Source: Perkinsela sp. CCAP 1560/9
Lineage: Eukaryota; Protista; Euglenozoa: Kinetoplastea
DNA length: 64,000 nt
Direction of reading: 5' to 3'
NCBI GenBank assembly: GCA_965644495.1
Contig: CBFFSA010000001.1
Span: 3,410,001 to 3,474,000 of the forward strand
Part shown: in pieces, positions 2,266 to 51,450 of the stretch
Position numbering within the stretch: the stretch's first letter is position 1
Layout of the letters: every line of letters begins with the position of its first letter
The notes under the pieces: generated by a model
Seen by the model: only the letters and a program-made list of their open reading frames with translations
The model's database searches: none
What the model was told of the DNA's origin: nothing
Made by a program: the position numbers and the translations under genes

Positions 2266-3639
2266 ATGCATCGATCTATAGATGCCGAAGTTACTGCTGT
2301 TCTGAGCCAGCTCCGAATCTTAAACGATGCGGATCGTAAATTTTTTATGTCCCTGTGGGAAGCCCGCGCGGAATCTGCTTTGCTAAAGGAGCTCACCACC
2401 GGCCATGAATCCACTGTCGCAAACTTTATGCTGCGAATCCTCACCACGATTCATACGGAGTCTGTACGAAAAGAGATTACCCGACTCTGTGCCATTCTCT
2501 GCCGTGAATCCACAAAATTCTCCATTGCCTACGCCAACGCCATGCAAACCTCCCAATTTGTCGCCCAGAGCCTCCCCTCCGCCTCCGGAAGCACCCTCGT
2601 CTGTCTCGCCTACGCCCTCTGCCACAACGACACCCTCCAGAACTACGTCCCCAAATTCCTCCGCCTCACCAACGCCATGCTCCGCAAGACCTCCGAGGAG
2701 GACCCCCCGCCCCCCTCCGTGGTCCACGACACCCCCGCCCTCCTCAAGGCCCTCACCATCTTCCTCCGCAACCGCGCCCTGCGTGCCGCGTTCTGTGCCA
2801 ACGACACCCCCGCCCGCCTCCCCCGCCTCATCACGCTCTACTGCGCCGGGGACTTCGCCGCGAACGCCCAGCTCGCCTACGACACGCTCTTCTGCTGCTG
2901 GGTCTGCCTCTACCAGCCCAGCGTGATTGCGCCCCTGGTCGCCCAGGAGCGCCTGATCCCGATCGTCCACGACGTGCTGCGCCGCGCGGCCCGGGAGAAG
3001 TGTGTCCGGGTCGCGCTCGCGGTGGTGGAGGTGCTGCTGCTGCAGCAGAGGCGGTACTCCTGGGGCACCCACCCCGGGCTGTCCGCGTTGAGTGGGATGA
3101 ATGACGGCCGCGGGCCGTGTTTTGTGCAGGAGATGTGTGCGATTGGGCTGGTGAAGACGCTGGTGCGGTTGGAGAAGAGGACGTGGGAGGATGGGGATAT
3201 TCCCGCACGGTTGGGGGAGATTATTAAGGAACTTACGATGAGTTTTGAGGCGATGACGACGTTTACGCAATATCAGGGGGAAATCCGAAGCCGGCATCTG
3301 GAGTGGACCCCGCCGCACACAAGCGAGACGTTCTGGAAGGAAAACATTCATTGCTTTGAAGAGAACGAATTTGAAGTTGTGCAGGAGATTTATGAAATCC
3401 TTCGTACCTCGAAAAATGAGCAATCGCTTGCCATAGCCTGTCATGACATTGGAGAGCTTGTTCGGTACCACCCACAAGGTAGAAAAGTGCTAAGTGCACC
3501 AATCTTACAAGGACTGGACGAAAGCGTGCTAAATTTAATCACGCATGAGTCTCCCATGGTAAGTAGGCACGCACTGATGGCCACGCAAAAAATTTTAGTA
3601 CAGAAGTGGCAGTACTTGGATGTCCAAGAAGTTAAGTAA
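2266..3639 (+). CDS. VMA13: V-type H+-ATPase subunit H
   Basis: C-terminal domain motifs LEWTPPH..ETFWKEN, LAIACHDIGELVRYHPQGR, V...AL.A.QK; also REKCVRV motif. Confidence 0.92.
   Translation: MHRSIDAEVTAVLSQLRILNDADRKFFMSLWEARAESALLKELTTGHESTVANFMLRILTTIHTESVRKEITRLCAILCRESTKFSIAYANAMQTSQFVAQSLPSASGSTLVCLAYALCHNDTLQNYVPKFLRLTNAMLRKTSEEDPPPPSVVHDTPALLKALTIFLRNRALRAAFCANDTPARLPRLITLYCAGDFAANAQLAYDTLFCCWVCLYQPSVIAPLVAQERLIPIVHDVLRRAAREKCVRVALAVVEVLLLQQRRYSWGTHPGLSALSGMNDGRGPCFVQEMCAIGLVKTLVRLEKRTWEDGDIPARLGEIIKELTMSFEAMTTFTQYQGEIRSRHLEWTPPHTSETFWKENIHCFEENEFEVVQEIYEILRTSKNEQSLAIACHDIGELVRYHPQGRKVLSAPILQGLDESVLNLITHESPMVSRHALMATQKILVQKWQYLDVQEVK
2520..3280. other. C-to-G polarity island 1 (switch near 2950)
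   Basis: C-ending codons on the left, G-ending codons on the right; boundaries by eye. Confidence 0.85.
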
Positions 3640-3901
3640 ATAGTGTCAGCTTAAGTGAGAGTAACCTTTTATTGTTATGTCGTTAGACGTATCATGTATC
3701 ATTTCACTACATGGGCAAAATGCTGCTTAACACGCTATCGATTTCCTTAAATACTCTAAAAGTAATCGTTAATACTTTGACTGTTTGTGCCAATAGAAAG
3801 GTATGATTGAAGGTACATACTCTTTTATGATGTAGAGCAACATTTACTATATTTTTTTTTGTGTTTTTTTATCTAAAGCTTAGCTATCTTTAGCTTAGGT
3901 G

Positions 3902-5533
3902 ATGGCGGATATGACTTCTGATACGGCATGTAAAATAGCCTGCGAAGCACAAACAGGACACCCACAACCTTCGGAGGCCTTCCAAAATCTGCAAAACGCC
4001 TACGCCAAACAGCAACAATCCTTGGTGACTTTGCATGAAATGCATTCCAAGCGTGTGAGCGATCTTCAACTCCAGATTCAACTACTGAAGCAGAAGGAGG
4101 AAGAGGCCGTGCAACGCGTCGAAGATGCCGATCAAGCGACCAAAGCAGCGGAGGCTAAGTTGGATCTGGTAACCTTGGAATTAAATATTCTAGTAGAAAA
4201 TTCTCAACAGAAGGTGGTTGCACAAGAAAAAGAATATGAAACGAAGCTGACCTCATTGCACAGCTCGCTAGCAGAAGTTATACAAAAACAAAAATGCGAG
4301 ATGGAAAGCGCGACAAATAAATTGGAGAAAACCAGAATTGAATTAGTAAAGGCGAAAGCAGAAACTGTTAAGGTTCCCAAGCTTATAGCTGAGGCTGTGA
4401 ACGAGGTAAATCTTTTGGCTTCGGTACATATACTTAATCTTGAAAAACAGATTCGCATTCTGTCGGAGGAAAAATCTGCGAACGATAACGAAAGAGAAGT
4501 GCTTCAAAAAAACCTCTTGGACCTTAGTAATAGAGTTTCTCAAAACGACAAACAGTGGCAAACTCAGGTGGAGAAACAGCAGAACGAAATACTGTCTAGT
4601 CGAATGCAATACGAAGAACTGCAGGTTGTTAACCGTGCTCTTGAATGCCGAATTGAGGATATAAAAAATGGTGTATGCGAGGAGCATTGTGCTTCTATTG
4701 AGCAATTGAACGAACAACTAGTGCGCGAACGTGAATTAAGGTGTACAACTGAAAATCTATATGAACAGCTGAAGGAAAAAGTATGCGTATCTGAGAAGCA
4801 TTTCGAGGAGTACCAGATGAAAGCCACGTTAGACATTAAACGGAATCGCGACTGTGCGTGGAAGAATGCCCTGCTAGTTGCTCAGGAAACAAAATCCTAT
4901 AATGAACTCTTCGCAGCATTACATGCTAAGCTAAACAGCGCGAATGCAGAAGCGGCGGCGACGCTATCCCTGCGAGATAGTACGATAGAACTTCTTCGTC
5001 AAGAGCTGATCAGCCTTCGAGGCAATATGGAAAATGGAATGACAGAACAACAGATATCTCAACAGGAAGAATTGGATCTTCTTCGAGATCAAATTACACA
5101 GTTACGCCAAGTGAAGACACCACAAGACCTTCCAGCAAGCGTAAATAATGACGCAATCCGAATCGAGTCCATTGAACAAGAAAACGCGAGCCTAAAAATG
5201 CAGCTTCAAACATTACAAATCACTTTAGAAATGCAGCGATCCGAGCAGGAGATGATTAACAGTGAATTACGACAAGCACATGCCTCAGAAGTCGAAATCG
5301 TTCACAGAAATTCTACAGAAAAAGCTGAACAATCTTTTGAAATGTTGCAGAAATATCGTAACGAATCTCTGCAGGCTTCTGAAAATGCTTCACGGTTGGA
5401 GGCGAGAGTGAGAGAGTTGGAACAGGAATTGAAGTCCACAGTTTTAACTTTAAACAGGGCACGGGCCAAAGCTATTCTTCAAGAAAATTCGGAAAAAGCA
5501 GATGAAGAACCTTTGCACTCTCGTAAAAGATAA
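3902..5533 (+). CDS. Long coiled-coil protein, function unknown
   Basis: About 540-aa ORF rich in E/Q/K/L with heptad character throughout. Confidence 0.75.
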   Translation: MADMTSDTACKIACEAQTGHPQPSEAFQNLQNAYAKQQQSLVTLHEMHSKRVSDLQLQIQLLKQKEEEAVQRVEDADQATKAAEAKLDLVTLELNILVENSQQKVVAQEKEYETKLTSLHSSLAEVIQKQKCEMESATNKLEKTRIELVKAKAETVKVPKLIAEAVNEVNLLASVHILNLEKQIRILSEEKSANDNEREVLQKNLLDLSNRVSQNDKQWQTQVEKQQNEILSSRMQYEELQVVNRALECRIEDIKNGVCEEHCASIEQLNEQLVRERELRCTTENLYEQLKEKVCVSEKHFEEYQMKATLDIKRNRDCAWKNALLVAQETKSYNELFAALHAKLNSANAEAAATLSLRDSTIELLRQELISLRGNMENGMTEQQISQQEELDLLRDQITQLRQVKTPQDLPASVNNDAIRIESIEQENASLKMQLQTLQITLEMQRSEQEMINSELRQAHASEVEIVHRNSTEKAEQSFEMLQKYRNESLQASENASRLEARVRELEQELKSTVLTLNRARAKAILQENSEKADEEPLHSRKR

Positions 5534-5892: not shown

Positions 5893-7155
5893 ATGTCGAG
5901 TTCACACTCACGTCGTGTTCAGCGGATACTACACATGGAATCCGGACAGGTTGGTGCCTCTCGAAATGATGATCTCACTCGTCACTACGCACGTCTCTTG
6001 TTAAGATTAATCTTTCCTGTAGTTATAACGATGGTAGGGGTGATCTGGTCCGTATGCTGCCTATCTGATGATCATCTCGCAGATGCTACAGCACTTCCTC
6101 TTCTTTTTGAAGAGGGTGAACACCTCTCTCATTCCACCAACGTTCGTGCGGGAACAATGAATGCGCTCATTCTCGTTGGTGTCATTGCTGCCGCCACGAT
6201 TCTCATTGTTTTACTATACAAATGGGGTTGTAAACGTCTACTTTTCGCTTGGTTGCTTACAGGAGTCTTTTCTCTTTTGGGATTGCAAATGTGGTTATGG
6301 TTAGACCTACTCTGTGCTACCTATCGCATACCGTACGAAGCGCTAACTATGGCCTTTGTAGTCTGGAATCTAAGTCTGGTAGGAATACTTTCTATCTTTT
6401 TCGAAGGTCACCCATACATACGACAAGGTTACCTTATTGTTATTTCAATTATTCTGGGTTGGTTGTTGTGTAAACTGCCACAATGGACTACGTGGGCACT
6501 TCTACTATTAGTTGCCATTTACGACATTTTAGCCGTGTGCTTACCGTACGGACCTTTGCGCCTCTTACTTCAGGAGATCGAACGCAGAGGGGAGGCGGTT
6601 CCTGGTTTGATATACGAACCTCGTAGCGGGGTTGCCTATCAGGGCGACCTACAAGATCGTATCAATATTGAGGAAGAAAACATTGATGAGACCGTTACAA
6701 GCGGAAGCATAGTGGATGTAACTGTGGGAGAGCAAACGTCAAACTCGTATTCAAACAATGGCTCCACTGAAGAGCTTTCTGCTTACCAACGCAATGAGGA
6801 AGTAACAATAATATCTCCAAGTGCGGAGAATTCCTCTTCAGTGTCTCAAGAAGCAACCGCTCAAGCTGCTACAAGTGGCACTTTCGAATTTCCAGCCAAC
6901 TCTTTCGGACTTGGTTTAGGTGACTTCATTTTTTATTCTTTGCTTGTCGGACGTGCTGTTCGCACCTCTATGATATCTTGCATTTGTTGCATGGTGGCTA
7001 CTGTAGTTGGCCTCTCATGTACCCTACTCGGACTTATGTTCCTTAGGAAGCCTCTTCCAGCGTTACCCATTTCTGTTCTTCTAGGATGTGCATTCTATTT
7101 CTCGTCTCGTTTTCTACTAGAGCCTAATATCCAGAAAAATATGTCTTGGCATTAA
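5893..7155 (+). CDS. PSEN: Presenilin (GxGD intramembrane aspartyl protease)
   Basis: Multiple TM segments; catalytic 'AIYDILAV' and 'GLGLGDFIFYS'; C-terminal 'LPALP'; 'GPLRLL' motif. Confidence 0.95.
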   Translation: MSSSHSRRVQRILHMESGQVGASRNDDLTRHYARLLLRLIFPVVITMVGVIWSVCCLSDDHLADATALPLLFEEGEHLSHSTNVRAGTMNALILVGVIAAATILIVLLYKWGCKRLLFAWLLTGVFSLLGLQMWLWLDLLCATYRIPYEALTMAFVVWNLSLVGILSIFFEGHPYIRQGYLIVISIILGWLLCKLPQWTTWALLLLVAIYDILAVCLPYGPLRLLLQEIERRGEAVPGLIYEPRSGVAYQGDLQDRINIEEENIDETVTSGSIVDVTVGEQTSNSYSNNGSTEELSAYQRNEEVTIISPSAENSSSVSQEATAQAATSGTFEFPANSFGLGLGDFIFYSLLVGRAVRTSMISCICCMVATVVGLSCTLLGLMFLRKPLPALPISVLLGCAFYFSSRFLLEPNIQKNMSWH

Positions 7156-7769: not shown

Positions 7770-9770
7770 ATGGTCGATACGACGTCGAAAAACCTTGACG
7801 CAACCGAAGTAGATGACATGTCCGCACACCTCAGTGAAGCAAAAATAGACTCACGATCAAGCACAAACAACGATGCGCAGCGAAAGCAAGACACTTCCTC
7901 CTCTCGACGTCCTCCCCCCATCGCGCTTCCCACGGAATCTCACGAGACAAAGCCCTCCGATGAAGCTTCTGGAACCAAGCTCGAGCCTCGTACCCCTGTA
8001 GCGGTGGACCTTCCCAACAGTGCCTTGCAGAACGCACTTCCGTACCTTACACTGGAGGGTCTGCTCACCGCCCGATCCGTCTCCCGCAGCCTTCTACACG
8101 CCGTGCACGGACGCTACCTCACTATGTACAACCAGGGCGTCGTGTTCCTCCACGCCCCTGAGGGGGGTTATGCCACCTACCTAACGTCAACCGACAATGC
8201 CCACCGCTGTCTAACCTGTGGAGGCCCACGGCCGGGAACCCATGCAGAACCCGGAGCGATGAAGTATAAGAACATGGAGAGTGTCCCGGAGACCTCCGCG
8301 CATCCTAGCGATACGTCGGCTGCGAAGGAAACGGACGGCGCGTCGTGTGTCGCGTGCGCTCCTCCCGCCTCCCGGCTGTTTGTCGGTCAGCTCCGCCGTC
8401 AGCATACCGCCGGGTCGATTTTGTGGGCCCTCGCGATGGTCGCCCCTGAGGTGGCCATCGCCCACGTCGACAACCGCACCAACCGCGACACTGGCCGCGA
8501 GAAGGGGTGTTGCTGGATCCACATTCCCTCCCGCTTCGAGTCCACCCTCCTCGGTCTCAACCGTCGCCTCCTGTTCGACATCAACCCCCACGGCGGCTCG
8601 CTCTCCCAAGGCGAGGGGTTCTGGCGCGTCCCGGACCACTTCGCCCGGGTCTCTGACCTCGAAGGCTTTGCCCTACGCCGGGTCGAACGCGACCTCCTCC
8701 TCCCACGCCGCCCCGTCGTCATCGAACGCGCCAACGGCTCCGGTGGCCGTGACCCCACCCGTGGACCCCGTGGCGGTCTCCACAACCTCCCCTCCCTCAC
8801 CCGACACACCCCTCGTGAGTGTGCCCGAGCCACCCCTCTTAGTCTCCACCCCGCAACCGCTCCCCCACCCCCACCCCCTCACCCCCCGATGCCCCCCACA
8901 GGTCTCCATCCCTCCACCCTCCCCGGTACCATGACAACCCCGATGCCCACCACAACCCACCGGGACACAACCACCACCACGACGACTCCTCACCCTACGG
9001 CTACGACTACCCTTCCCCCCCCCGTTGCCCCCTACCCCCCGACCTGCACCCCCACCGGCCCCTCCCCCCGGGCCCCCGCCCCCCCCCTCCCGCTCTTCCG
9101 CGTCCCCTCCGGCACCTGGGTCCCCTCCCCCGACGGCACCACGCTCGTCCACGTGGCCTGCGCGTGCGCGGAGTGCCAGGCGCTCCGGGTGCTGGGGAAC
9201 GAGACCCCCGCGGCGTCCCCGGTGACCCCCACGGGGGCGGGGGCGCGCTGGCCCGGGGCGGACTCCCCCGCGAGGGTGCGGTACGGGTCGGGGATCGGGG
9301 CCGTACCCCATCCCCACCCCCCGGGGATGCGGCGGAGTCACAGCGGGGTGATGGTACACCCGTACAACCCACAGGGTATGCCGCGGGGGGAGAGTGGGGA
9401 GGTGATGATGGGGAGTTCGGCATCGCTGGAGGGGGGGGCGTTGGTGGCGGGGGTGCATACCCCGCCGTATATGGTGATTACCCCGGAGCTGGGCGAGCTC
9501 TCCGGGATGGGAGGGGGGGGGATGATGGGACACTACCCGCCTCCGATGATGATGGCCCACCCCTCGGAGGAGATGTTGGCCTCGAGTGAGAATGTGACCC
9601 CGGCGCCGGTGCTGGTGGATCCCTCGGTGCCGTACCCTGTGAGTCCGTTGCTGGCGGGGTACCACCCGGGTGGGGGGTCTCCGGTGTTTACGGCCACGAA
9701 TGTGGCGTTTGGTTCTCCGCAAGGTGTGCGTCACCGGGCACGGTCCGGTACTCCGCACAACCAGGGATAG
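7770..9770 (+). CDS. F-box-like plus RRM-like protein with Pro-rich then Gly/Met-rich low-complexity tail
   Basis: F-box-like DLPNSALQNALPYLTLEGLLTARSVSR; RNP2/RNP1-like RLFVGQL...EKGCCWIHI. Confidence 0.6.
   Translation: MVDTTSKNLDATEVDDMSAHLSEAKIDSRSSTNNDAQRKQDTSSSRRPPPIALPTESHETKPSDEASGTKLEPRTPVAVDLPNSALQNALPYLTLEGLLTARSVSRSLLHAVHGRYLTMYNQGVVFLHAPEGGYATYLTSTDNAHRCLTCGGPRPGTHAEPGAMKYKNMESVPETSAHPSDTSAAKETDGASCVACAPPASRLFVGQLRRQHTAGSILWALAMVAPEVAIAHVDNRTNRDTGREKGCCWIHIPSRFESTLLGLNRRLLFDINPHGGSLSQGEGFWRVPDHFARVSDLEGFALRRVERDLLLPRRPVVIERANGSGGRDPTRGPRGGLHNLPSLTRHTPRECARATPLSLHPATAPPPPPPHPPMPPTGLHPSTLPGTMTTPMPTTTHRDTTTTTTTPHPTATTTLPPPVAPYPPTCTPTGPSPRAPAPPLPLFRVPSGTWVPSPDGTTLVHVACACAECQALRVLGNETPAASPVTPTGAGARWPGADSPARVRYGSGIGAVPHPHPPGMRRSHSGVMVHPYNPQGMPRGESGEVMMGSSASLEGGALVAGVHTPPYMVITPELGELSGMGGGGMMGHYPPPMMMAHPSEEMLASSENVTPAPVLVDPSVPYPVSPLLAGYHPGGGSPVFTATNVAFGSPQGVRHRARSGTPHNQG
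8400..9720. other. C-to-G polarity island 2 (switch near 9170)
   Basis: Poly-C tracts at 8860-9130, poly-G tracts at 9190-9680. Confidence 0.88.
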
Positions 9771-10099: not shown

Positions 10100-11485
10100 A
10101 TGAGGCTTTCGCCTTTCAGTTCTTTGGTCAAGACCAACGCAACTATTGGGAGGTTGAATTTTGCTTTTGACGCATTTTCTGGAATAGCAATCCCACCAAG
10201 GCCCCGTAGGAAATATGCTCCTGCAAGAAGATTTGCTTCTTGTTGTCGTGGTCATGAGCGCACGCTGTGGTTTTCCAGCAAGCGAATGTACTGGAACCCC
10301 TTTTTGTCTTCGAGTAGTCAACGTTTCAATTGGAGAAGGTATCGACCGATTTGTTGGGTTTCTGGTGCAGCGATTACAGCCCTTTTTTTGTTTGACAGTC
10401 CAGCTGCACGCCTTCAAATAGCGCGTGAAAAGTTTCACTGTTTCATAGAGAGGTGTTCCTTATTTTTAAGAGATTTGAAATCGTTACCAGTGTCCTTGGC
10501 TAGTCGAAAATTAAGCGGAGATCAGGCAGAGTTCAACTTTGAAAGCGTGGAAGATCTGGACAGCAATGAGTCTCTGGAAGAATATATTGCTGCAATGAGC
10601 ATAAAATCACCCAAGAAAGAGACTGGCAAGAAGCGACGTACTGGAAAACCGCCTCCTGGCTTCACCAATGCTTTTCAAGCTTACGCACTGGGGGATATCA
10701 TTCCTCTCACTCACGATGTCGCACTGCTTCGCTTTCTTTTTGATGACCCCGACACTGAGTTTAACCTCAGGCCTTGTAGCACACTACAAGGAAAGTTCAC
10801 CACAGGTCTTCAGCTTGCCGATTTGATAACCCGGTTCTACACCCCCGTGACCCCTAACCACACAAAAGGCTATTTCGACATCATTGTCAAGCGCAAACCG
10901 AATGGAATGATGACAAAACACTTATTCGGGCTACACGTCGGTGACCGCATGCATTTCCGTGAGGTCCCTTTCAAACTGCTGTACAAACCCAACCGGTGGA
11001 AAGAGGTTGGTCTCATTGCCGGGGGCACGGGACTCACCCCAATGCTTCAGGTCATCCGGCACGCCTTGGAGGAGTACCCCGAGGACCGTACCAAGCTGCG
11101 GCTTATCTTTTGCAACCGCACTGAGAACCACATCCTGTTAAAAGGGCTGTTGGACCGACTCGCCCGGGACCATCCCGAGCGGTTCTCTGTGGTCTACGGT
11201 GTGGACTGTCCGGTGGATGCGGAGAGGTGGAAGGGGTTCACCGGGTACCTCACCGCCGATCTGCTCCGGGCTCACCTGCCCCCACCCTCCCCTAGCTCGC
11301 TTATTCTGGTATGTGGGCCAGACAATTTGCTGTGGCACGTTGCCGGGACCCCGACCCAGCTGATGGATACCCTCTCCGGGGGTCGCCCGGTACAGCCCAT
11401 GGCCGTGGATCTTGCCAACCTGACCAAACTTGGGGGTTTGTTGGCACAGTTGGGATACACGGATCATGACGTGTATCGGTTTTGA
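10100..11485 (+). CDS. NADH-cytochrome b5 reductase-like flavoprotein (FNR family)
   Basis: RFYTP, GMMT, IAGGTGLTPM, LIFCN and VCGP motifs; N-terminal extension with basic and hydrophobic segments; start codon uncertain. Confidence 0.9.
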   Translation: MRLSPFSSLVKTNATIGRLNFAFDAFSGIAIPPRPRRKYAPARRFASCCRGHERTLWFSSKRMYWNPFLSSSSQRFNWRRYRPICWVSGAAITALFLFDSPAARLQIAREKFHCFIERCSLFLRDLKSLPVSLASRKLSGDQAEFNFESVEDLDSNESLEEYIAAMSIKSPKKETGKKRRTGKPPPGFTNAFQAYALGDIIPLTHDVALLRFLFDDPDTEFNLRPCSTLQGKFTTGLQLADLITRFYTPVTPNHTKGYFDIIVKRKPNGMMTKHLFGLHVGDRMHFREVPFKLLYKPNRWKEVGLIAGGTGLTPMLQVIRHALEEYPEDRTKLRLIFCNRTENHILLKGLLDRLARDHPERFSVVYGVDCPVDAERWKGFTGYLTADLLRAHLPPPSPSSLILVCGPDNLLWHVAGTPTQLMDTLSGGRPVQPMAVDLANLTKLGGLLAQLGYTDHDVYRF

Positions 11486-30449: not shown

Positions 30450-30476
30450 TATCTACAGTAAGTTGGTTTCTACCTA

Positions 30477-36448: not shown

Positions 36449-36774
36449 CTATACCCCCCCCCCCTGCTTATGAGTTCCCGCAATTCTGGTACGCTTATGA
36501 GTTCCTTTTTCTAAGGCGAATGTTTTTGTACCCACTTTTCGAGAAGCGATTTTTTTTTGAACAGAACAAAAATTCACAATTTTACCAACTACTGTACGTC
36601 AGGCTGCTGTACAGACTTGCATACTAAGCTGACAATCTTTTTAGTGCCAGTACCATTGTAAAGGAGAACCCGCGGCGCCTATTTTCGCTTTTTTATAGCT
36701 CGATTTCTGGTCTGGTACGCTTATGAGCTCCTTTTTCTCAAAACGAGGGAACTCATAAGCAGGGGGGGGTATAG
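36449..36774. mobile_element. MITE (326 bp, TA-flanked)
   Basis: TA|CTATAC(C)nTGCTTATGAGTTCCC...GGGAACTCATAAGCA(G)nTATAG|TA; internal direct repeat tctggtacgcttatgag near 36485 and 36711. Confidence 0.88.
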
Positions 36775-37780
36775 TAATATAAACTTTTTTTAAAAACTAT
36801 AAAAAACTATATTTTTTTGTTTCACGTTTTAAGCACTCCTAAGCTCACCAACACGCCATAAATACACAGATAATTCTTTTGTGTACGATTTTTCTTATTT
36901 TTAAACCCGGAAATTGATGCCCGAAATTAAAGGTACGAGGGGTACTTCCTGCAAAGATTATATTATTGAAGTGTTGCGCACGGAGAGAACTAAACAAGCG
37001 GTTGAATGTAACTTGTGTCAGGAGGGGTCGTACCCCAGTCCCAACGAGTGGCCTTGACAGATTGTCTTGTGCGAATCTTGCGTCCCAAACATCTTCTCAC
37101 TGCATCGCTGTCGCCGCACATTGGCTGGAGCCACCGACGTTATGACTTGGGACTGAATAACTGCTGCTCACAATTCTATGAGTTTGAATAAATACAATCT
37201 TATGAGTTTGAATAAATTACGCGATGTGTTGTCCGGTGGAGAGTGCGTGTTTCCTATCGTCACTCCTTTCGCATGCGTTTCATTGCTATTTCCGATTGCT
37301 ATTTTTCATTGCTATTTCCGAGGAGATGACGCACTAGTCGATGATATTTTTCGGCGGTGATGGAACCGCGGGGAAGAGGGAACATGTTTCGATAACCACC
37401 ATAAAAATCGAAGGGTATCTCCCCGTTTGTAAAGGATTCCGATATAACAAAAGAATCTTTAAGGGACATGCCCTTCCATTTTTGTCGTGGTTTGCCAAAG
37501 GTGCTTTTAGTATCTCCCTCGTCCACTTTAGCTTGGGTTACATTTTTTTCAGAATTTCTTGTCATATCATACGTACGTAAGCGTGTAAGAACGCGTGTAG
37601 AGGCGTGTGTATGTCCTTCACAAGCGGAGAGGACTCAAAAAATATCACTTGTAAAGTGAAAAATACTTTATACTTTTCGCATAGTTTTATAGTAAAATAT
37701 AGTAAATGTAGTACTATACAAATGTATAGTAACTATATTCCATGAAAAAACTATATTTTACTATATTATACAAACAACAA

Positions 37781-38188
37781 AGGGGGGGGTACGTCTATTG
37801 TTGGCATTCATCTATTGTTGGCAAACTAATAAAATCACCTATTGTTGGCAATCGGTTATTGTTGACATTTAATTAATTTTGATTTTTTTGACCCATTGCC
37901 ATGTGTAACGGATAAAATCCTGGAATCTGCTAAGGTCAAAATTTCCACGTTTTTCGAAAATTTTCGAAAATTTCCTCTTTTTCGAGGATACGTATAAGTA
38001 TCCTCGTGTATGAGGGGGGCGACGGTAGTGTAAGTGATAAAAGTAGCGCAAGTTACCTTGATAGCCAACAATAGATGATTTTATTGCCGTTCCATCTATT
38101 GTTGGTTAAGGGGGGTATTGTATCATCTATTGTTGGCAATCGGCTATTGTTGGCAAAAAAAGTTGCCAACAATAGACAAGCCCCCCTG
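37781..38188. repeat. Element or element-end with about 9 copies of CTATTGTTGGCA in both orientations
   Basis: Copies near 37795, 37812, 37839, 37857, 38064 (rc), 38096, 38127, 38144 and 38164 (rc); G-tract on the left and C-tract on the right as TIR-like ends. Confidence 0.75.
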
Positions 38189-38711
38189 GATAAAAAAACT
38201 CAAAATTCCGCGGGGGGAAGATACATGTATCTTGAAACCACTGTATTAACCCGGAACACGGTACAAATTAAATCATTTACAATGCCGATACCTCAGTTCC
38301 TATTTTTTGCTATTCTCACAACAGGTTCGTCTCATTATTTTTCTTCTAAACTGTATGATGACAATTTTAACGTGATTGCTGTTCTGTGCAGGAAGAAATG
38401 ATAACGTATACCCACAATTCGCTGAGTTATTTTTTATTTTGTGTACACAGAACATTCACATTCACAAAATCACGTTCATAAAATCAACATAATAAATGTA
38501 GCCTGCGCCTGCGCCGTCTCACCAATTCTTTTTATTTGCATGAGAATATATTTCTAAGGCTTCGTGAGGGTGGATCTCTTATGAATGTATGACAGTGTAT
38601 TGTAAGTCCCTTGATCGTAGCACGTATGCTGTATGATAGTATTCGGACTGTTTCACGTAGACGGCTGCGCCTATATTGTTTCCTTCGAGAGAAGCGGGCA
38701 CCTGCCCACTA

Positions 38712-41700
38712 ATGAAGCTTCGCTGCCAACTATTTGTACTGGATCATGTATACGAGACAGATTTTGCAGACCAAAAAAGCCATGGAACTACTATACTTAA
38801 CCGTGTGTCTAGGAAACACGAAATCAGTTCATTGTCCTCTAGCTATCCTGGAAGCGTTTCAGCCCAACAGGCTCGAGTTCCGGTGCTCAGGTGTTTCGGA
38901 AGAACATTGAAAGGGGAAAGCGTATGCGCTCGAATTCACGGAGTTTTTCCTTACATTATGCTTTACTCACCTCTTCAGCACTCGAGAGAGAATGGTTTAG
39001 GTGTCTGGGATGACACTCTTCCCCGCAGGTTTAGCTGCACATTGGAAGATGCTATTAGAGAGCAATACCACATGCCACGAAATAGAAACATTATTCATTC
39101 CGTATGTCTTGTAAAGGGAATGCCTTGCTATGGTTATCATCCTGATTCTGCTATCTTTTTTAAAGTGGAATTCTATCACACCGCATACGTAAAGCGTGCG
39201 GTAAATGTTTGCACTCAAAGCACAGCTGTCGGTGGTATCAAATGGCTCCCACATGAAGCTCACTTGAGTTTTGAGTTACAATTCTTAGTTGACTTTGACC
39301 TTGGCGGCATGTCATGGCTGGACCTGTCTGATTGTAAATCTGCGCAACACAAAACGACTACAGTTGAAATTGAAGTAGACGTGGAGTGTAGAAACGTACA
39401 ACCCGCTGACACAACTGTGACACAAGGTCATCGCTTTCAGTCGGTGTCATCTATGAAGTATGTTACGATGGAATTGGAAGAATTCTATAAGAATACTAAC
39501 GCCACAGATATGTTCTTATCGGAGCTGAAAGAAACTGAATCCGCATATCACACAAACAATACTGAAGCATCTTTGATATTATGTGACAACAAGAAGAATC
39601 CTGTCAATCGTAACATGGAGAACATGTTCGAAGAACTCTATTCAGTTTCACATAAAGAAGCAGAAGTCGTGCATTCAACTCCTTCATTATCATCAACGGG
39701 TGCCTTCAGTGACAAAGAGGCTACACCAGAGCCATTAACTTTGGATCTCATTCGCGAGATCGGGCGCACCGGATACAGTCCTGAAGCCATATGTTTTTTA
39801 GATGATGATAATAATTCAATCAAGCGCAATAGTAGTTCATGCTTAGAGCATTCCTCAACGAGCACCGAATTTTACAAACAAGAAAGCGAAGATGTTTCTT
39901 TAAGCCCACGTGAAAATGTCAATGTACGTCGGGAGCTTGACTTTGAAACTCCACGAAAGGCTCGGAACTCAGGTCGTAAAAATACAAAGGATACATCAGC
40001 TCGCCGTCTACAGCATGACATTCTGAACTACAACGCTTTTTCTCAGGCAGAGGCTGCAAGTTATTCCATCTCGTGCAGTGGTAAAACGCAAGATTCTCTT
40101 GATTCTGTTGAAAGATCAGAAAGTTCCATTGAATTGTTCTCAGATCGTCCCACTGTGTCTATCGGTCATACCAGTGAATCATATTTCCTTCCAAGGAGAA
40201 ATGGACGGGACGAAGTGAGTCATATCGAAAAGCCTGGTACTCCATTACATAGTCCCATGCGCGCTCAAGGAGAGTCAGAGGATTTTATTCTTACTCCAAA
40301 ACGCTGTGTGCGCTTTGACAACTCTTCAAAATCAGCTGGGTTGGGTTCAGTCTCTGAAAAAGAAACATGTTTAAGAACTGACGGCAGTTCAGCCGGACCT
40401 TACAAGTCTATGCCCAAGTCTATTTGCGGTCCTATGAATGTTGGTGTCCCGAAAAGGTGGAAACGCGTCGTTTTTCGTACTTCCGCTCCATCTTGGAAAT
40501 CTGTTGAAAGTACCCCAGATTCCATAAACAATCTGCAAGATCCTTTTCCTAGAAATGCATTGCCTACTTCCCTTTCTACTCGATCATCCCAAGCATACAG
40601 GGAGTTTCAAGAGATATTCAAAAAACAGACTTATTATCCTGAGCATTATGATGTATCATTGAAGACTGAAATTAATTTGACCATATCTGCAAGAAATTTG
40701 TCCCCCAGCTGGGCAGAAATCAAGTCCTCCTATGACACCTGTTCCAGAAGTGCAGAAATGGCTATCCGAGATAGAATACGAACACCAAGTGGAGAAAAGG
40801 GAATATATACAGCAATTTCTGGGATAAAAAATGTGCGCAGCCCTGAGGCTTTTCGGTTGGAAAATTCACGTAAGCATCTTGTTCAATTACGCTGCCTTTA
40901 TTTCGAGATTATGATAGGCTCACGAGGTGTCTTACGTGCTGCATGTCTAATCTTTTATAACGCTCAATCGGAGAATATTACCGACTCCGAGATGCATATA
41001 ATTGGTGCTGGGGCCCGAAGGTTGCGCACGAAAGGCCAATCACAGTGTCACGTGTGCTGCATTTATCACCATACAGAATTTTTACTTCTGCGTGCCGTGG
41101 AGAAAAAGTTGGTCAATAGTGACCCCGACCTCATTGCAGGGTGGGAAATACAAAAACGAAGTTTAGGATACTTTATATCAAGATATAAACATGTCATCGG
41201 GAGTGAACCTGTACTCGGAAGATCGATTAGTAATATTACTGATAAAGATGCGGGTTCAGCTGCACCGGATTCAAGGCCAAAATCTAAGGAAATCAAATCA
41301 GACGATGACCAGAGTGACATAAACCAAATTGATAGAGATGAAAACCGAAAGAAACATAGAGAACATGAAAATTTTCTGTCCGTTTTCGGTTCTGTTTTGA
41401 ATGCAGCCGAGAAAGATGAGTCAAGTGTGTCGTTGGAACACGTATCAACAGACACGTATAAATCTTCGCGAACTCTACATTTACATGGAAGAATACTAAT
41501 AAACTTATGGAAAGTCTACCGGAGCGAACAGAAATCCAAATCATACACACTTCAAAACGCAGCATGGCATTTACTGCGTCGTAGACTTCCTGAACATTCA
41601 GACCTAAGTTTGGAGCAATACCTAACGAATGGATCTGTTTCCCAATCCTACTATGCTCTACATCGCCTTTGGGACTACACAATGTGCAGTCTTGAAGTTT

Positions 41701-43847
41701 GTTTGAAGCTAGATTTCCTTGTTCGCACCGCTGAAATGGCTAGAATCTACGGTATACAATTCTTTGAAGTCCTCTCCAGAGGATCTCAGTTTCGTGTGGA
41801 ATCTATCCTGTTGCGAATAGCCCGGCGTCAAAACTATGTCGTGCTTTCACCATCAACAGAAGAAGTAGCCAGGCAAAACGATCAAGAGGCGGTACCCTTG
41901 GTAATGGAACCTGCCAGTGGATATTACCGCGACCCCGTTCTTGTGCTAGACTTTCGGTCCCTGTACCCTTCCATAATAATCGCATATAATTTGTGTTACA
42001 CTACTTGCCTTGGAAAATTATCCCGATTGGAAAGTAAAAAATTGGGAGTTTTATCAGGATATCAGACCCCTGTTGATGTTGTTAGATCTATCAAATCTCA
42101 CATTAGGATTGCACCCAACACTACGATGTTTGTCAGTGAGGATCTTCGTAAAGGCATTATTCCAACAGCACTGCGTTCAATACTGGGTACAAGACAGCTT
42201 GTCATCAAGGCAAGAAAAAAAGCTGAAGCTGAGAGCGATCTCATAGGCAGCCGGGTTCTTGAAGCACGTCAACTGGCTCTCAAGCTGCTAGCAAATGTTA
42301 TTTATGGATATACGGCCGCGACATGGACAGGGAGGATGCCGTGTTCGGACCTCGCCGACGCAATTGTGCTACTTGCGAGAAACGTGCTGGAACAAACTAT
42401 TCACAGTGTGAACCAGAATGCGGAATGGGGAGCTTTCGTTGTGAGCGGAGACACGGATTCACTGTTCGTACATATAAAAGGGGCAACTCTACCTCGAGCT
42501 TTTCAAGTTGCGCACGAAATAATAGACTTTGTGCAGAATCGCTTTCCTTCTCCAATTGCGTTAAAGCTGGAGAAGGTGTATCTGCCATGTGTCTTGGTCG
42601 CTAAGAAGCGTTACGCCGGATATGCTTACGAATCACTTTCAAGCACTCCGAAACTGGATGTTAAAGGTTTGGAATGCATTCGTCGTGATCAAACCGATGC
42701 GACAGCGAATATGCTGACTAAAATGTTGCATCTTCTTTTCAAAAATTCGGATATTCAAGCTTTGGAAAGTTACTTTACTAGACAATGCGAAAAACTTTTA
42801 AGTGGAAGCGTGACACCTTGTGATTTGATTCTACGTCAAGAAGTTAAGTTTGGTACCTACCAAGCAGCCAATTTGCCTCCTGCAGCCGAAATTGCCGTAC
42901 AAGAAGTGAAGAAAGGAGAAGGAGTTCCAATGTACGGAGAACGGGTGCCATATCTAATTACTCACACCGCGCAGTTTGCCAAACGACTCCGTGACATGTT
43001 GGTACATCCGCGCGTATATTTTTCTAGTATAATCAGCAAACCTGATTCCGGACAATTTTTTAGTATCAATATGTTTGACAATCCAGAGACGCAACGACCA
43101 CCGAATATTCATGTAGAATACTATCTGGATAGACAAATCGTACCTGCACTGCAACGCGTTTTTGGCCTAATCAACGTGCACCTTGGCGAATGGCTCTCTA
43201 GAGTGCGAAGGTCAGTTTCTTCTATCCCTTCTATGAAAGCTACTCGTGACACATTAGATGGTTTTTTGCGGCAAGCGAATTGTGTTTCGTGTTCAAAACC
43301 GGCCGGTTCTACGGCAGTACCAATACGGACTGAAGAATTTCCCAAGCGAAGTAAAAAAGTGGTGGCCAAAAAAGCAAATGAGAAAATTGTGAATGAATCC
43401 AATGCCTTATGTCAACAATGCTTTCAGGATTCTCAGACGACTCTACTAGGCCTCCGTATGCGCCTCAACGCAGTGCAGAAGAGACTTCACAATCAATACA
43501 TCATTTGCCACCGTTGTACAGGGGAAGTCGGGGGACCAGACGAAGTCTCGACGTGTGTGAACACTGAATGTCCAATATCATTTGAGCGTGTTAAATTGCA
43601 AGGAAGGTTAAGTTATCTTCATGAAACTGTTATAGATATAGAGGATCTGTTTAATCCTATAAGATTGAACAACTCTGATGAAACTCATTCAAACTTTAAG
43701 GTCGATGCGTTCTATAGAAAACCTTTTAATAAATTGTCCAACCGGGAGCCCTGCGAAACACTTAGCTCAGTCGAATCCTCAGAGTACATTGATCTTCTTA
43801 CCCCGCGAGCCTCATCTCGAGATATAAACGAGATTTATGTCGAATAA
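38712..43847 (+). CDS. REV3: DNA polymerase zeta catalytic subunit
   Basis: N-terminal RVPVLR.FG...HGVFPY; VLSRGSQFRVES; LDFRSLYPS.IIAYNLCYTT; QLALKL.ANV.YGYT.A..GRMPC; GDTDS; KKRYAG; C-terminal CysA and CysB clusters. Confidence 0.95.
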   Translation: MKLRCQLFVLDHVYETDFADQKSHGTTILNRVSRKHEISSLSSSYPGSVSAQQARVPVLRCFGRTLKGESVCARIHGVFPYIMLYSPLQHSRENGLGVWDDTLPRRFSCTLEDAIREQYHMPRNRNIIHSVCLVKGMPCYGYHPDSAIFFKVEFYHTAYVKRAVNVCTQSTAVGGIKWLPHEAHLSFELQFLVDFDLGGMSWLDLSDCKSAQHKTTTVEIEVDVECRNVQPADTTVTQGHRFQSVSSMKYVTMELEEFYKNTNATDMFLSELKETESAYHTNNTEASLILCDNKKNPVNRNMENMFEELYSVSHKEAEVVHSTPSLSSTGAFSDKEATPEPLTLDLIREIGRTGYSPEAICFLDDDNNSIKRNSSSCLEHSSTSTEFYKQESEDVSLSPRENVNVRRELDFETPRKARNSGRKNTKDTSARRLQHDILNYNAFSQAEAASYSISCSGKTQDSLDSVERSESSIELFSDRPTVSIGHTSESYFLPRRNGRDEVSHIEKPGTPLHSPMRAQGESEDFILTPKRCVRFDNSSKSAGLGSVSEKETCLRTDGSSAGPYKSMPKSICGPMNVGVPKRWKRVVFRTSAPSWKSVESTPDSINNLQDPFPRNALPTSLSTRSSQAYREFQEIFKKQTYYPEHYDVSLKTEINLTISARNLSPSWAEIKSSYDTCSRSAEMAIRDRIRTPSGEKGIYTAISGIKNVRSPEAFRLENSRKHLVQLRCLYFEIMIGSRGVLRAACLIFYNAQSENITDSEMHIIGAGARRLRTKGQSQCHVCCIYHHTEFLLLRAVEKKLVNSDPDLIAGWEIQKRSLGYFISRYKHVIGSEPVLGRSISNITDKDAGSAAPDSRPKSKEIKSDDDQSDINQIDRDENRKKHREHENFLSVFGSVLNAAEKDESSVSLEHVSTDTYKSSRTLHLHGRILINLWKVYRSEQKSKSYTLQNAAWHLLRRRLPEHSDLSLEQYLTNGSVSQSYYALHRLWDYTMCSLEVCLKLDFLVRTAEMARIYGIQFFEVLSRGSQFRVESILLRIARRQNYVVLSPSTEEVARQNDQEAVPLVMEPASGYYRDPVLVLDFRSLYPSIIIAYNLCYTTCLGKLSRLESKKLGVLSGYQTPVDVVRSIKSHIRIAPNTTMFVSEDLRKGIIPTALRSILGTRQLVIKARKKAEAESDLIGSRVLEARQLALKLLANVIYGYTAATWTGRMPCSDLADAIVLLARNVLEQTIHSVNQNAEWGAFVVSGDTDSLFVHIKGATLPRAFQVAHEIIDFVQNRFPSPIALKLEKVYLPCVLVAKKRYAGYAYESLSSTPKLDVKGLECIRRDQTDATANMLTKMLHLLFKNSDIQALESYFTRQCEKLLSGSVTPCDLILRQEVKFGTYQAANLPPAAEIAVQEVKKGEGVPMYGERVPYLITHTAQFAKRLRDMLVHPRVYFSSIISKPDSGQFFSINMFDNPETQRPPNIHVEYYLDRQIVPALQRVFGLINVHLGEWLSRVRRSVSSIPSMKATRDTLDGFLRQANCVSCSKPAGSTAVPIRTEEFPKRSKKVVAKKANEKIVNESNALCQQCFQDSQTTLLGLRMRLNAVQKRLHNQYIICHRCTGEVGGPDEVSTCVNTECPISFERVKLQGRLSYLHETVIDIEDLFNPIRLNNSDETHSNFKVDAFYRKPFNKLSNREPCETLSSVESSEYIDLLTPRASSRDINEIYVE

Positions 43848-44327
43848 ACATTTTGGTTGAATACCTTTGTTTGACCTTACAGTAAGGGTAATAGGCGGCT
43901 TCGGAGCAGTTTTGCTGCAGCCTTGGTAACATTTGTTGCTAATCGAGGATGTTGTGATGGTTGCGCAACCACTATCAATAGCAACATAAAAGCCAAGTAG
44001 AGTGTATTCCCGGTCAATGTCCATTATTCCTATCAATGTCCATTATTCCCACCGTGATTGGCACTTCATCCGGATTAGTTTCAAATTATTCTTTGTTGAA
44101 CGACGCACTGCAGTTTTGATGTGATTCGTGTCCACACCCATCTGCAATTCTTCGAATACACATCAAGTACTTTCCCTGTACAGTAAGGACGCTTAAAAGC
44201 AGCATTTCATCTCTCATCATAGCGATTCGTGTTGAGCACACTTTCACGTGTTTTTACTGTCATTTTATTCTTCGTTTTCTATTTTCTCAACTTGTATATT
44301 ACATGTCCTGATCCTCCCGTGCTTCAG

Positions 44328-45104
44328 ATGGCACCTCACCGTCCTCACCTAACCTCCTTCTACCTCCCTCTCACCCTCCTCACCTGCCTTGTGCTGTGTG
44401 TCGAAGCCCTCACCGTCCGCACCTTCTTCCCCGGCTCCCTCTCCTCCCCCTCTCTCCTCCTCTTTTTCCTCACCACCTTTGCCACCGTGGTCCTCCTCCT
44501 CCTCTTCGGGGTTTTCACCCCACGAAAAGACATCTTCCACACGTTAGCCCAACACGACATGGACCACACCAATACACATAGGCCTGGTTTCTCGAACGTT
44601 GCGGAGGATCCCGGCATGTTGGACCCCGATAGCGTCCCCCCCGCCCCTCCCACGGTGGCCGACCGGGTCCCCGGCGCCACCTACTCCTGTGAGCGCTACA
44701 CCCGGGACGCTCTCGCGGAGCTCCTCGGGTCCCAGCCCTACCGCCGCTGGCTGGAGCGCTCCATCCTCCAGGCCAACGTGCAGCGCACGGTGGCGGGACT
44801 CCGACACGCCCTGGTGCGTACCCTCCTGGGGTGCGTGCTCTCGGCCTGGGTGATCCGCGAGGGGGTGGGGAGGGGAGGGGGGGCGGTGGGGGTGGAGGCC
44901 GTGGCAGCGTTACTCACGGCGTTTCTGGTGGCGCTGCCCCCCCGGGAGGGGGTGGTGGCGGGGTGTGTGGTGGCGGCGAGCGGGGTGTGTTATCTAAGTG
45001 AGGGGGAGGAGGCGAGCTCGCTGCCGATTGTGACCTGTACCACCGTTATATTGCGTATATTGGCGGAGGAGACCTTGGGTGGGTGGAGTTCGTGTGTCGT
45101 TTAA
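44328..45104 (+). CDS. Hypothetical membrane protein
   Basis: Two N-terminal and several C-terminal hydrophobic segments; contains a C-to-G island; start codon uncertain. Confidence 0.6.
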   Translation: MAPHRPHLTSFYLPLTLLTCLVLCVEALTVRTFFPGSLSSPSLLLFFLTTFATVVLLLLFGVFTPRKDIFHTLAQHDMDHTNTHRPGFSNVAEDPGMLDPDSVPPAPPTVADRVPGATYSCERYTRDALAELLGSQPYRRWLERSILQANVQRTVAGLRHALVRTLLGCVLSAWVIREGVGRGGGAVGVEAVAALLTAFLVALPPREGVVAGCVVAASGVCYLSEGEEASSLPIVTCTTVILRILAEETLGGWSSCVV

Positions 45105-45160
45105 GGGCGTGTGTTTAATTAGGGTGGGGAAGGGATGGTTGACCTGCGTTGAAGTGCGGG
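44330..45160. other. C-to-G polarity island 5 (switch near 44800)
   Basis: C-rich at 44330-44780, G-rich at 44830-45160, extending past the stop codon. Confidence 0.85.
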
Positions 45161-48186: not shown

Positions 48187-48270
48187 CCCCCCCCCCCCCT
48201 GGACCCCCCCCCTGGACCCCCCCCCTGGAGCCCCCCCCCTGGACCCCCCCCCTGGACCCCCCCCCATGGA
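48187..48270. repeat. Minisatellite of about six C9-TGGA units; G-quadruplex-prone on the - strand
   Basis: Six tandem units of about 13 bp read directly from the sequence. Confidence 0.9.
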
Positions 48271-48674
48271 CCTCCCATTTTTTTCAAATTTTTTTTTCAG
48301 TTTTGGACCACCGGAGCCCCCTTTTATATTTTTTTCTTCTATTATATTACTGTGTTCCTCTTTATATTTTCACTGTTTTTGTTCACTTTTTTTTCAATAA
48401 TCGAGTGTAGAGCGGTAGTTTTACAACCACCGCAACATTCAATAAATACGAATTCAATGTGTATAGATTGTATATGAATACAATATGTATTGGCCTTCAA
48501 AAATGGCGGCATAAATAGAATAATAAATTAGAATAGCTTGAATGTAGCGAGGTCAAAGCACTCTCCTCCGAGGATCCGGATCTTCCCTAATTTCATACAT
48601 TGGTTTTGTTTTTTGAGCTAATAGTCCTTTACAAGTGTTTTTATAAGGAAATTCTGTTGCGTTCAAGATTTTTT

Positions 48675-50543: not shown

Positions 50544-50759
50544 AAAAGCAAAGTGAAGCACACTTGTGGGAGCAACTCGTTATTGTGTATATGCACACTG
50601 TACATTTCTTTTGGCAGGTGGGTTGGGTTCTGTATATCACCACCCTCTAGCCTAGAATGTGGGCGGTATCTAGACTAGATACTCATGCAAGGCACTATTG
50701 ATATAAAAAAACAACACAAAACCGTTCCAAAGCTTTCTTTCTCCTTCCTCCTTTTTTCC

Positions 50760-51450
50760 TTTTCCTTTTCTTCCTCTCTCCCTCACCACCACCCCCTTCA
50801 CCACCATGCTTCTTCTCGCCCTCTCCCTCGACTCCACCACCCCCTCCCCCTCCCACCCCCTCCGCCCCTCCAAACTCCACACCTCCACCCTCCCCCCCGC
50901 CCACCACCTTGCCCGTTTCACGGCCAACCTCTCCCACCCCCACCCCTCCTGGGACCCCGCCCTCCCGCTGTGGCAGTGGCACCACGTGCTCTGTGGGCGT
51001 GCGGGCCAGCCCGTGGCCCTGGCCTGGGCCTCCCTCGGCCTCCGCGGCACCCCGCGCTGGGCCGCCCTCCCCCTGCTCCCCTCCCTCCAGGGCGTGGAGC
51101 TCACCCACAATGCGCTACGGGGCGAGATCCCCTGGGGGGAACTCCCGGAGTCCCTCCACACGTTACTGCTCGCCCACAACCGGTTTACCGGGCCGTTGTG
51201 GTGCCTGGGGGCAGGAGGGGGAAGACTCCCGGGCAAGCTGCAGATGCTTGATCTCGCCCATAATGGGTTTAGTGGGGAGGTGGATCTCTGTGGGGACGCC
51301 CTTCCGGGGTCTCTGCAGGAGATGGATTTAAGTGGGAATAGCGGGTTGTGGGGGAAAGTGGTGGTGTATGCACTGCCGCCGAGGTTGAGGAATTATGATT
51401 GGGAGGGGACAGGGATTGTGGAGTGTTATGATTGAACAAGGGGAGTCTTT
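50760..51450. other. C-to-G polarity island 6 (switch near 51150)
   Basis: C-rich at 50760-51110 (starting upstream of the ATG), G-rich at 51200-51450. Confidence 0.85.
50806..51435 (+). CDS. Leucine-rich repeat family protein (GC-island-remodelled paralogue)
   Basis: Leader LRPSKLHTSTLPPAHHLARF, cap HPSWDPALPLWQWHHVLC, LRRs (LPESLHTLLLAHNRFTG, LQMLDLAHNGFSG). Confidence 0.85.
   Translation: MLLLALSLDSTTPSPSHPLRPSKLHTSTLPPAHHLARFTANLSHPHPSWDPALPLWQWHHVLCGRAGQPVALAWASLGLRGTPRWAALPLLPSLQGVELTHNALRGEIPWGELPESLHTLLLAHNRFTGPLWCLGAGGGRLPGKLQMLDLAHNGFSGEVDLCGDALPGSLQEMDLSGNSGLWGKVVVYALPPRLRNYDWEGTGIVECYD

Follow-up and report, generated by a model that had tools for sequence, protein, structure and literature searches.

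What local process could push one side of a gene segment towards C and the other side towards G, irrespective of the family to which the gene belongs? The question is raised by a 64,000-nt window (the whole stretch of DNA analysed here) of Perkinsela sp. CCAP 1560/9 (Kinetoplastea; assembly GCA_965644495.1, contig CBFFSA010000001.1, positions 3,410,001-3,474,000 of the forward strand), a kinetoplastid that lives as a symbiont inside the amoeba Paramoeba atlantica. Patches of about 1 kb, which we call islands, lie within its genes, each with a centre that separates a C-pushed side from a G-pushed one; they are real features of the genome and no artefact. A literature search found no published description of such islands.

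Detection and composition of the islands

The islands were located with a switch statistic, D, computed over 400-bp arms, whose null distribution (200 block-shuffles) reached a maximum of 0.18. D peaks of 0.23-0.38 stand at 2970, 9152, 19153, 24636, 44742 and 51111, with a GC content of 0.62-0.76, and change points calculated from four-fold degenerate sites only fall at 2952, 9149, 19129, 24746, 44774 and 51156, so that all six strong islands named in a preliminary description of this DNA were confirmed. A seventh, weak island proposed near 11180 does have a high GC content but shows no significant polarity (z 0.9), and the earlier list had missed two weak islands elsewhere. The features are as follows (no strand is assigned to the islands themselves; host strands are in brackets):

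2500-3310: Island 1, centre ~2950, in the V-ATPase subunit H gene (2266-3639, +)
8300-9770: Island 2, centre ~9150, in a 666-aa ORF (7770-9770, +) that lacks any Pfam match and turns from Pro/Thr-rich to Gly/Met-rich
10800-11485: weak GC-rich zone in the NADH-cytochrome b5 reductase gene, the tree of which shows no close relative
18400-19770: Island 3, centre ~19130-19150, in a 493-aa ORF (18287-19768, +) with no Pfam match, sitting on a stretch that differs between two haplotypes
22551-23684: weak C-then-G island, switch ~22950 (z 4.5), in a ribosomal L2-family gene
24000-25050: Island 4, the strongest, centre ~24640-24750, in an RRM/B-box gene (23865-25577, +)
44330-45160: Island 5, centre ~44770, filling the ORF at 44328-45104, with a G arm that continues beyond the stop codon
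50760-51450: Island 6, centre ~51110-51160, filling an LRR-family gene (50806-51435), with a C arm that enters the pyrimidine tract preceding the ATG
54605-55318: weak C-then-G island, switch ~54950 (z 3.7)

The bias persists at four-fold degenerate sites, where it amounts to roughly 75% C and then 65% G: left arms (-500 to -200) hold 72-77% C and 2-14% G and right arms (0 to +300) hold 60-69% G, against a background of 22% C and 20% G. The centres carry a negative-to-positive GC skew flip, the skew being lost past ~600-800 bp from the centre. The order was said never to be G-then-C. This holds in the window, where no GC-rich G-then-C island was found, and among 83 sampled genes, of which 18 (about one in five) show C-then-G and none the reverse; on contig C4, however, one GC-rich G-then-C island occurs in 200 kb, between two forward islands, and centres can be only 1-2 kb apart. 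Since C-then-G is unchanged by reverse complementation, the proposed comparison with minus-strand gene clusters cannot discriminate between explanations.

All GC-rich centres lie inside ORFs, and the bias is confined to single genes, spilling into UTRs without continuing into neighbouring genes; 19 of 20 skewed gene ends point inward. We considered intergenic origins or breaks acting inward and rejected them, as the arms stop short of the adjacent genes and several islands sit well away from gene ends. The family of the host gene is irrelevant (only 2 of 32 LRR paralogues are clear island cases), and orthologues of the host genes lack islands. One-way polarity, bias at four-fold sites, UTR spill and independence of gene family together support the earlier suggestion of a process that is symmetric about fixed points.

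The islands are neither artefacts nor inserted elements

Low-complexity runs of C and G, together with the transposon remnants present elsewhere in the window, might suggest an assembly artefact, an inserted element or a repeat family. This reading has next to no chance of being correct. An independent ENA assembly (ERZ24900291) matches positions 719-60019 at 99.7-99.98% identity, and island 1 is spanned by single Logan contigs in two further samples, which also disposes of the artefact concern raised beforehand. A DNA search of the organism's own genome with island 4 returned a single copy; host proteins align in frame through the islands, the V-ATPase subunit H end to end with its kinetoplastid orthologues; and, as the preliminary description had stated, the arms are not true inverted repeats, our search yielding low-complexity matches only. 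An element with true inverted arms, dispersed copies and an interrupted host frame is thus rejected. Tandem repeats account for short stretches only, a tRNA search found none, and the cores share nothing beyond C-run words, slightly above shuffles. The cores had been called CpG-rich; they are so because of base composition alone, their observed/expected CpG ratio being 0.61-0.98 versus 0.96 for the whole window.

One fixation-bias parameter fits the outward strand

On the strand that runs away from the centre, here called the outward strand, every base drifts to G, in every neighbour context and with no deaminase-like preference, while sites that can only be C or T barely move. At 200-400 bp from the centre, four-fold sites hold 66-72% G, 10-13% A, 11-13% C and 7% T; A/G-only sites are 80-84% G (71-86% overall); and C/T-only sites are 38-43% C versus a background of 45% (pooled, 37% versus 44%). 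Ordinary symmetric GC-biased gene conversion (gBGC), which had been offered as established background, is ruled out by the missing C gain at these last sites. A single fixation-bias parameter, B = 2 in favour of outward G (equivalently, inward C), predicts G 69, A 11, C 9 and T 11% at four-fold sites, and 86% and 46% at the two-fold classes. The composition is thus fitted by one bias of B ~2 favouring C on the retained strand of a resected break. A model of X-to-G mutation needs three fitted rates, and it also reproduces the two-fold sites. The outward strand also shows a slight excess of A relative to T and of T relative to C, which falls outside the one-parameter model.

The bias also reaches the proteins: proline is enriched three-fold in C arms and glycine 2.5-fold in G arms, and the LRR island copy carries 48% C at codon positions 1+2 versus 24% in its paralogues, indicating that it overrides protein constraint. 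RNA editing followed by cDNA conversion was rejected, the T-to-G change being strong.

Polymorphism in a small sample leans against ongoing hypermutation

Tracts where the haplotypes differ alternate with identical tracts. Across three islands and two comparisons, 28 linked variants comprise 8 synonymous differences in islands and 20 in flanks, a ratio of ~0.45x (best 0.4-0.5). Ongoing X-to-G hypermutation predicts ~1.65x, whereas the fixation-bias model predicts 0.8x at B = 2 and 0.5x at B = 4; for these linked variants, P is 0.0016 against 1.6x, 0.04 against 1x and 0.12 against 0.8x. Because mutation models predict a rise where a fall is seen, fixation bias is tentatively preferred over a mutator acting at origins. 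Coalescence time varies locally along the haplotype tract, which weakens this small comparison, and the all-site difference density in islands 3 and 4 (5.0/kb) is near that of the rest of the tract (5.6/kb).

A proposed strand-aware conversion at intragenic break hotspots

We tentatively favour, at somewhat below even probability, the view that the islands record, over the long term, a strand-aware biased gene conversion that favours C alone and acts at stable break hotspots inside genes. A double-strand break would form near the island centre, and 5'-to-3' resection would leave the broken chromosome with 3' tails, formed by its top strand to the left and its bottom strand to the right, which would then enter heteroduplex with DNA copied from the homologue. 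There, a mismatch in which the tail base is C would be restored, or escape conversion, more often than others. To the left of the break this would favour C alleles on the top strand, and to the right C alleles on the bottom strand. Both strands would then read C-then-G, scatter in the break positions would leave a mixed core depleted of A and T, and each arm would be about as long as one conversion tract (400-600 bp). The composition, its polarity and dependence on position, the altered amino acids and the lack of strong neighbour-base dependence are direct observations, as are the low island polymorphism (in a small sample) and the presence of meiotic genes and divergent haplotypes; breaks at the centres, sex or homologue repair, and a C-only repair rule are inferred. 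The fuller statement, in which hotspots are stably intragenic and heteroduplex repair protects only C on the retained strand, rewriting codons and proteins as it does so, is marginally less probable still. Resection and repair of breaks, one of the processes first proposed, survives only in this form of a strand-aware conversion bias, which the preliminary description did not put forward.

The recombination gene set includes a SPO11-type gene, a DMC1 that scores above the curated cut-off, and five MutS homologues, which together with the haplotype-difference tracts provides what classical gBGC requires; its strand-symmetric AT-to-GC bias is absent from the islands. As in the gBGC described by Li et al. 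2019 (PMC6715734), there is a GC peak of 1-2 kb, fixation bias can override protein constraint, and repair tells recipient from donor strand. Described gBGC, however, is scored as AT-to-GC without dependence on side, whereas the islands gain only outward G (inward C), G/C transversion sites are strongly affected and the hotspots would be intragenic; mouse non-crossover tracts, moreover, are only 30-41 bp long (PMC6715734), unlike the 400-600 bp arms. Several observations count against conversion at break hotspots: haplotype tract boundaries do not match the islands, and confinement to genes is not predicted. Hotspots formed without PRDM9 usually lie in nucleosome-poor intergenic or promoter DNA. 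Three other Perkinsela (97 kb together) showed no islands, and among relatives CCAP 1560/4, which also has SPO11 and DMC1 (PMC5601477), has none in the 32 kb scanned.

Alternative explanations

An unlikely alternative is a replication footprint, in which fixed origins drive X-to-G change on the outward strand by a process that may now be extinct. An exposed lagging-strand template could be damaged and REV1 place C opposite abasic sites, or synthesis could start in an error-prone manner; in a variant, the fixed points would be sites of fork stalling or termination, with G4s on both leading-strand templates. The minus-to-plus flip has the sense seen at bacterial origins, although the skew does not persist along an arm to a terminus; a spacing of 5-20 kb is plausible, and the three-rate mutation model copes with the two-fold sites. 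In its favour, the genome encodes three Y-family polymerases, UDG, AP endonucleases and Pol zeta; against it, the REV1 C-terminal domain was not detected (a weak test) and no repair gene was found to be missing (MutS, UDG, dUTPase, AP endonuclease and HhH-GPD glycosylases are all there). At constitutive human origins, too, mutagenesis raises GC locally and the skew inverts at the centre, a pattern that Murat et al. 2022 (PMC9645720) ascribe to a fixed process working in both directions; that is an effect on mutation rate, whereas diversity in the islands is lower and their four-fold sites are near saturation. We lowered the probability of origins because those mapped in T. brucei by SNS-seq are intergenic, flanked by poly(dA)/(dT) and of opposite polarity, with plus-strand G4 upstream (PMC13179062). 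They resemble the islands in being kinetoplastid and in having strand-specific G-rich sequence two-fold symmetric about a centre, but read G-then-C, whereas the islands are intragenic, GC-rich and C-then-G, without plus-strand G4 upstream and minus-strand G4 downstream. Centres 1-2 kb apart on C4, and the absence of islands from three relatives although origins are universal, also speak against this reading. Origin firing as an active mutator, suggested at the outset, is accordingly disfavoured by the low polymorphism and the T. brucei pattern.

Less probable again is selection for structure, either of DNA G4/i-motif pairs or of a loose mRNA fold-back between C arm and G arm. It would account for the low synonymous diversity and for confinement to single genes, and canonical G4 motifs occur in five of the six islands in the expected strand pattern, plus-strand motifs lying downstream of the centres. 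Island 1, however, has no canonical motif on either strand, so that G4 selection, as proposed earlier, is not required; the proposed fold-back gave no clear signal either, folding energies against synonymous shuffles reaching z 0.3, -2.0, -1.7 and 0.1 (weak power), and alone would permit G-then-C. The host genes are arbitrary, orthologues and most LRR paralogues doing without islands, and it seems implausible that redundant elements would be selected, in the face of protein constraint, at hundreds of sites in each island.

We consider internal bidirectional transcription starts or R-loops, in which damage to a displaced G-rich strand would make the skew self-reinforcing, as at CpG-island promoters, very improbable. 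The polarity would suit displaced non-template strands on both sides, judging from known promoter GC skew, but this is still a mutation model and meets the same diversity problem; unlike CpG-island bidirectional promoters, the islands show no CpG excess over their surroundings, and the left arm would need stable antisense transcription inside a gene. In a spliced-leader-bearing RNA run (contigs unstranded), one contig passes through island 1 and has leaders only at the gene starts at 3859 and 5731.

Finally, resection at break hotspots exposes single strands, and damage to these (C-to-T, C-to-G, A-to-G), alone or combined with ordinary gBGC, is a further candidate, to which we give scant credence. 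Such damage is known from human meiotic breaks, where it is strand-asymmetric and spans a similar width, ~1 kb to either side (Hinch et al. 2023, PMC7615360). Left of the break, however, the exposed strand is the forward one, and its loss of C would build G-then-C; no deaminase-like context was seen either. The polarity already contradicts this reading, short of a different resection geometry in this lineage.

Implications

If strand-aware conversion is the correct reading, the islands would bear on whether it is the G or the C of the recipient strand that the repair bias in gBGC targets, a point left open in PMC6715734, and would provide sequence-level evidence that Perkinsela recombines, with hotspots located in a kinetoplastid. 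Were the hotspots intragenic and C-protecting, break sites and conversion tracts of an endosymbiotic kinetoplastid could be read off its genome sequence, which would show by natural example that GC-biased conversion can be single-base and strand-specific; were the islands origins or fork sites, the sequence would be a readable replication map contradicting the T. brucei pattern. The centres are placed to ~100 bp, which makes the question directly testable. On both readings, about one sampled gene in five appears to be reshaped by a local process that is not adaptive, and genes reshaped in this manner affect annotation, codon analyses and phylogenies.

The islands are real and run in one direction

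The assembly that holds the window comprises 21 Mb in 110 contigs, and the genes of the window have no introns and all lie on one strand. The six C-rich-then-G-rich islands of the preliminary description were all found at their claimed positions, far above block-shuffled sequence, and their polarity is not only kept but strongest at four-fold degenerate sites, where the left arms carry 72–77% C and the right arms 60–69% G over a background of ~21% each. The mixed core is nearly devoid of A and T, and the islands end fairly sharply on their outer sides. The proposed one-way order also stands: 18 of 83 genes read C-then-G (z >3) and none the reverse, counted over the window and 200 kb of C4, another contig of the assembly whose genes lie on the minus strand. 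Two claims fell away, since the cores, described as CpG-rich, show no CpG excess, and the weak island near 11180 is GC-rich but not significantly polar; two extra weak islands were located, at about 22950 and 54950.

2266–3639, + strand: V-ATPase subunit H gene, with island 1 (centre ~2950)
9150, 19130–19150, 24640–24750 and 44770: approximate centres of islands 2–5
25600–44300: 19 kb without islands, holding a DDE_3 transposase remnant (33163–33636) and the Pol zeta catalytic subunit gene (38712–43847)
48191–48276: 13-bp minisatellite (C9 run plus TGGA, ~6.5 copies) with G4 motifs nearby and, unlike the islands, no GC-skew pairing
50806–51435: LRR-family gene, with island 6 (centre ~51110–51160)

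On C4 the islands are clustered, with centres ~1–2 kb apart (20000–25000, 59500–65000, 126000–131000 and 175000–180000), and one long gene sometimes carries two or three (ClpB; ORFs of 1534 and 1360 aa). An assembly artefact or inserted element is refuted, its probability being vanishingly small: an independent assembly (ENA ERZ24900291) is 99.7–99.98% identical over 719–60019, and single contigs span island 1 in two other samples, one of these runs being RNA in which spliced leaders occur only where genes start. In RNA contigs of run X1 the spliced-leader sequence is joined to trans-splice acceptors at 3859 and 5731.

Host genes are rewritten in place

The islands consist of host genes whose sequence has been rewritten in situ. 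V-ATPase H, whose best relative is from the prokinetoplastid Papus (45%), aligns with its orthologues straight through island 1. Short LRR genes form a very large family, with 199 or more matches spread over many contigs and several copies inside the window; 2 of 32 paralogues are clearly affected, and the left arm of the window copy has 48% C at codon positions 1 and 2 vs 24% in paralogues. Pro, Thr and His are raised in C arms, and Gly, Met, Glu and Val in G arms. The arms extend into UTRs and pyrimidine tracts, so the bias is not a codon effect. The islands are confined to single genes: strongly skewed 5’ ends are C-rich 9:0 and 3’ ends G-rich 10:1, where uniformly placed centres would split evenly. 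Separately, ~60 weak AP-endonuclease matches are spread genome-wide; many fall in ORFs of 1200–2500 aa, several share identical scores, and they probably belong to an expanded non-LTR retroposon family.

Substitutions follow a strand-specific rule

On the outward strand (5’-to-3’ away from the island centre), four-fold sites at 200–400 bp are 66–72% G, 10–13% A, 11–13% C and 7% T. A/G-only sites there reach 80–84% G, while C/T-only sites stay at 38–43% C, equal to or below background, and the G gain is seen in all neighbour contexts. The rule is any base to G outward, equivalent to any base to C on the complementary, inward strand. Ordinary symmetric GC-biased gene conversion (gBGC) is excluded because it would raise both kinds of site. 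The islands behave most like gBGC at a hotspot yet lack its defining symmetry, and are therefore not to be classed as classical gBGC.

Haplotype variation as a tentative test of mutation against fixation bias

With three extra rates, an equilibrium mutation model reproduces the composition and predicts 1.65x synonymous variation in islands; one fixation bias alone (B ~2) accounts for the same values and predicts 0.8x, a figure that drops to 0.5 when B is 4. Among the variants listed, which by table ordering apparently omit only 23 entries outside 2209–3772, island 1 has 6 synonymous haplotype differences vs 10 in the smaller flanks of its gene; the tract with islands 3 and 4 has 2 inside vs 10 outside. 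The best island/flank ratio is 0.4–0.5 (P = 0.0016 vs 1.6, 0.04 vs 1.0 and 0.12 vs 0.8, among variants listed). This ratio is the main, if fragile, discriminator, built on 28 linked variants among those listed, with uneven coalescence along the tract and an assumed transition ratio. All-site variation in islands 3 and 4 is 5.0 per kb, near the 5.6 of the rest of the tract.

Haplotype differences in V-ATPase H are 16/16 synonymous among variants listed; those in ORFs 19966–21513 and 18287–19768 are non-synonymous in 9/12 and 7/9 cases, as if nearly unconstrained. Against the ENA assembly of the same organism, SNP tracts (~0.3–1.1%; 5939–6817, 17784–30115 and from 59621) are separated by tens of kb with 0 SNPs, a pattern pointing either to a diploid (with loss of heterozygosity or with recombinant haplotypes) or to an assembly that switches between haplotypes.

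A proposed model of strand-aware conversion at breaks

We tentatively favour, at somewhat under even probability, gene conversion at break hotspots with C-keeping repair on the retained strand. With 5’-to-3’ resection a broken chromosome retains its top strand on the left side of the break and its bottom strand on the right side (PMC7615360). Were breaks to fall at island centres, the retained strands would be the inward ones, and repair that kept only C on them would yield C-then-G order, an A/T-poor core and reduced diversity, and would leave inward A/G sites unbiased; these predictions match the observed polarity, core, A/G-site pattern and diversity. Poor repair of C-containing mismatches would push in the same direction. 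A proposed recipient-strand GC-restoring pathway may act on G or C, not both (Li et al. 2019, PMC6715734). The genome carries a SPO11-type gene, DMC1 and five MutS homologues, and tracts of haplotype difference alternate with identical ones. Two genes of the uracil-DNA glycosylase family lie within 12 kb of each other (2165731–2178470 of the window's contig), and their substrate class could bear on repair bias. One speculative idea for the intragenic centres is that indel-rich intergenic DNA may block heteroduplex formation. The mechanism is unproven, and break repair is our reading of the sequence pattern.

A replication footprint seems unlikely: the islands have origin polarity by the bacterial rule and human origins give a precedent (PMC9645720), but it predicts more variation where less was found, and the islands depart from T. 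brucei origins in two tested features, the mapped origins lying between genes and having their G4s arranged the opposite way round (PMC13179062). A now-extinct footprint is excluded only weakly. Selection for G4s or fold-back is distinctly improbable. It would account for the reduced diversity and the confinement to single genes, but island 1 lacks a canonical G4, and the z-scores for folding come out at 0.3, −2.0, −1.7 and 0.1. Bidirectional transcription or R-loops, without support, are very unlikely, and resection damage to exposed strands is extremely so, because it would strip C from inward strands and give the wrong polarity, G-then-C.

No islands in the sampled DNA of other Perkinsela

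No description of the islands was found in the literature searched, which took in few subscription journals, and they are apparently undescribed so far. The C4 ClpB matches a Paramoeba atlantica MMETSP0151 protein at 100% identity and that of Perkinsela CCAP 1560/4 at 75%, which identifies the genome as belonging to the Perkinsela symbiont of P. atlantica. Three other Perkinsela have 0 islands in 97 kb, where the density seen here would give ~6, and their ClpB orthologues likewise showed none. On present sampling the islands thus appear lineage-specific. A faint gene-level C-then-G trend occurs in this genome and in relatives (p 0.035 across three relatives), and one CCAP 1560/4 gene (L024:12820–13470) has a C-rich first half (z 3.9); together, that gene and the relatives' trend may reflect, in a weak form, the process behind the islands.
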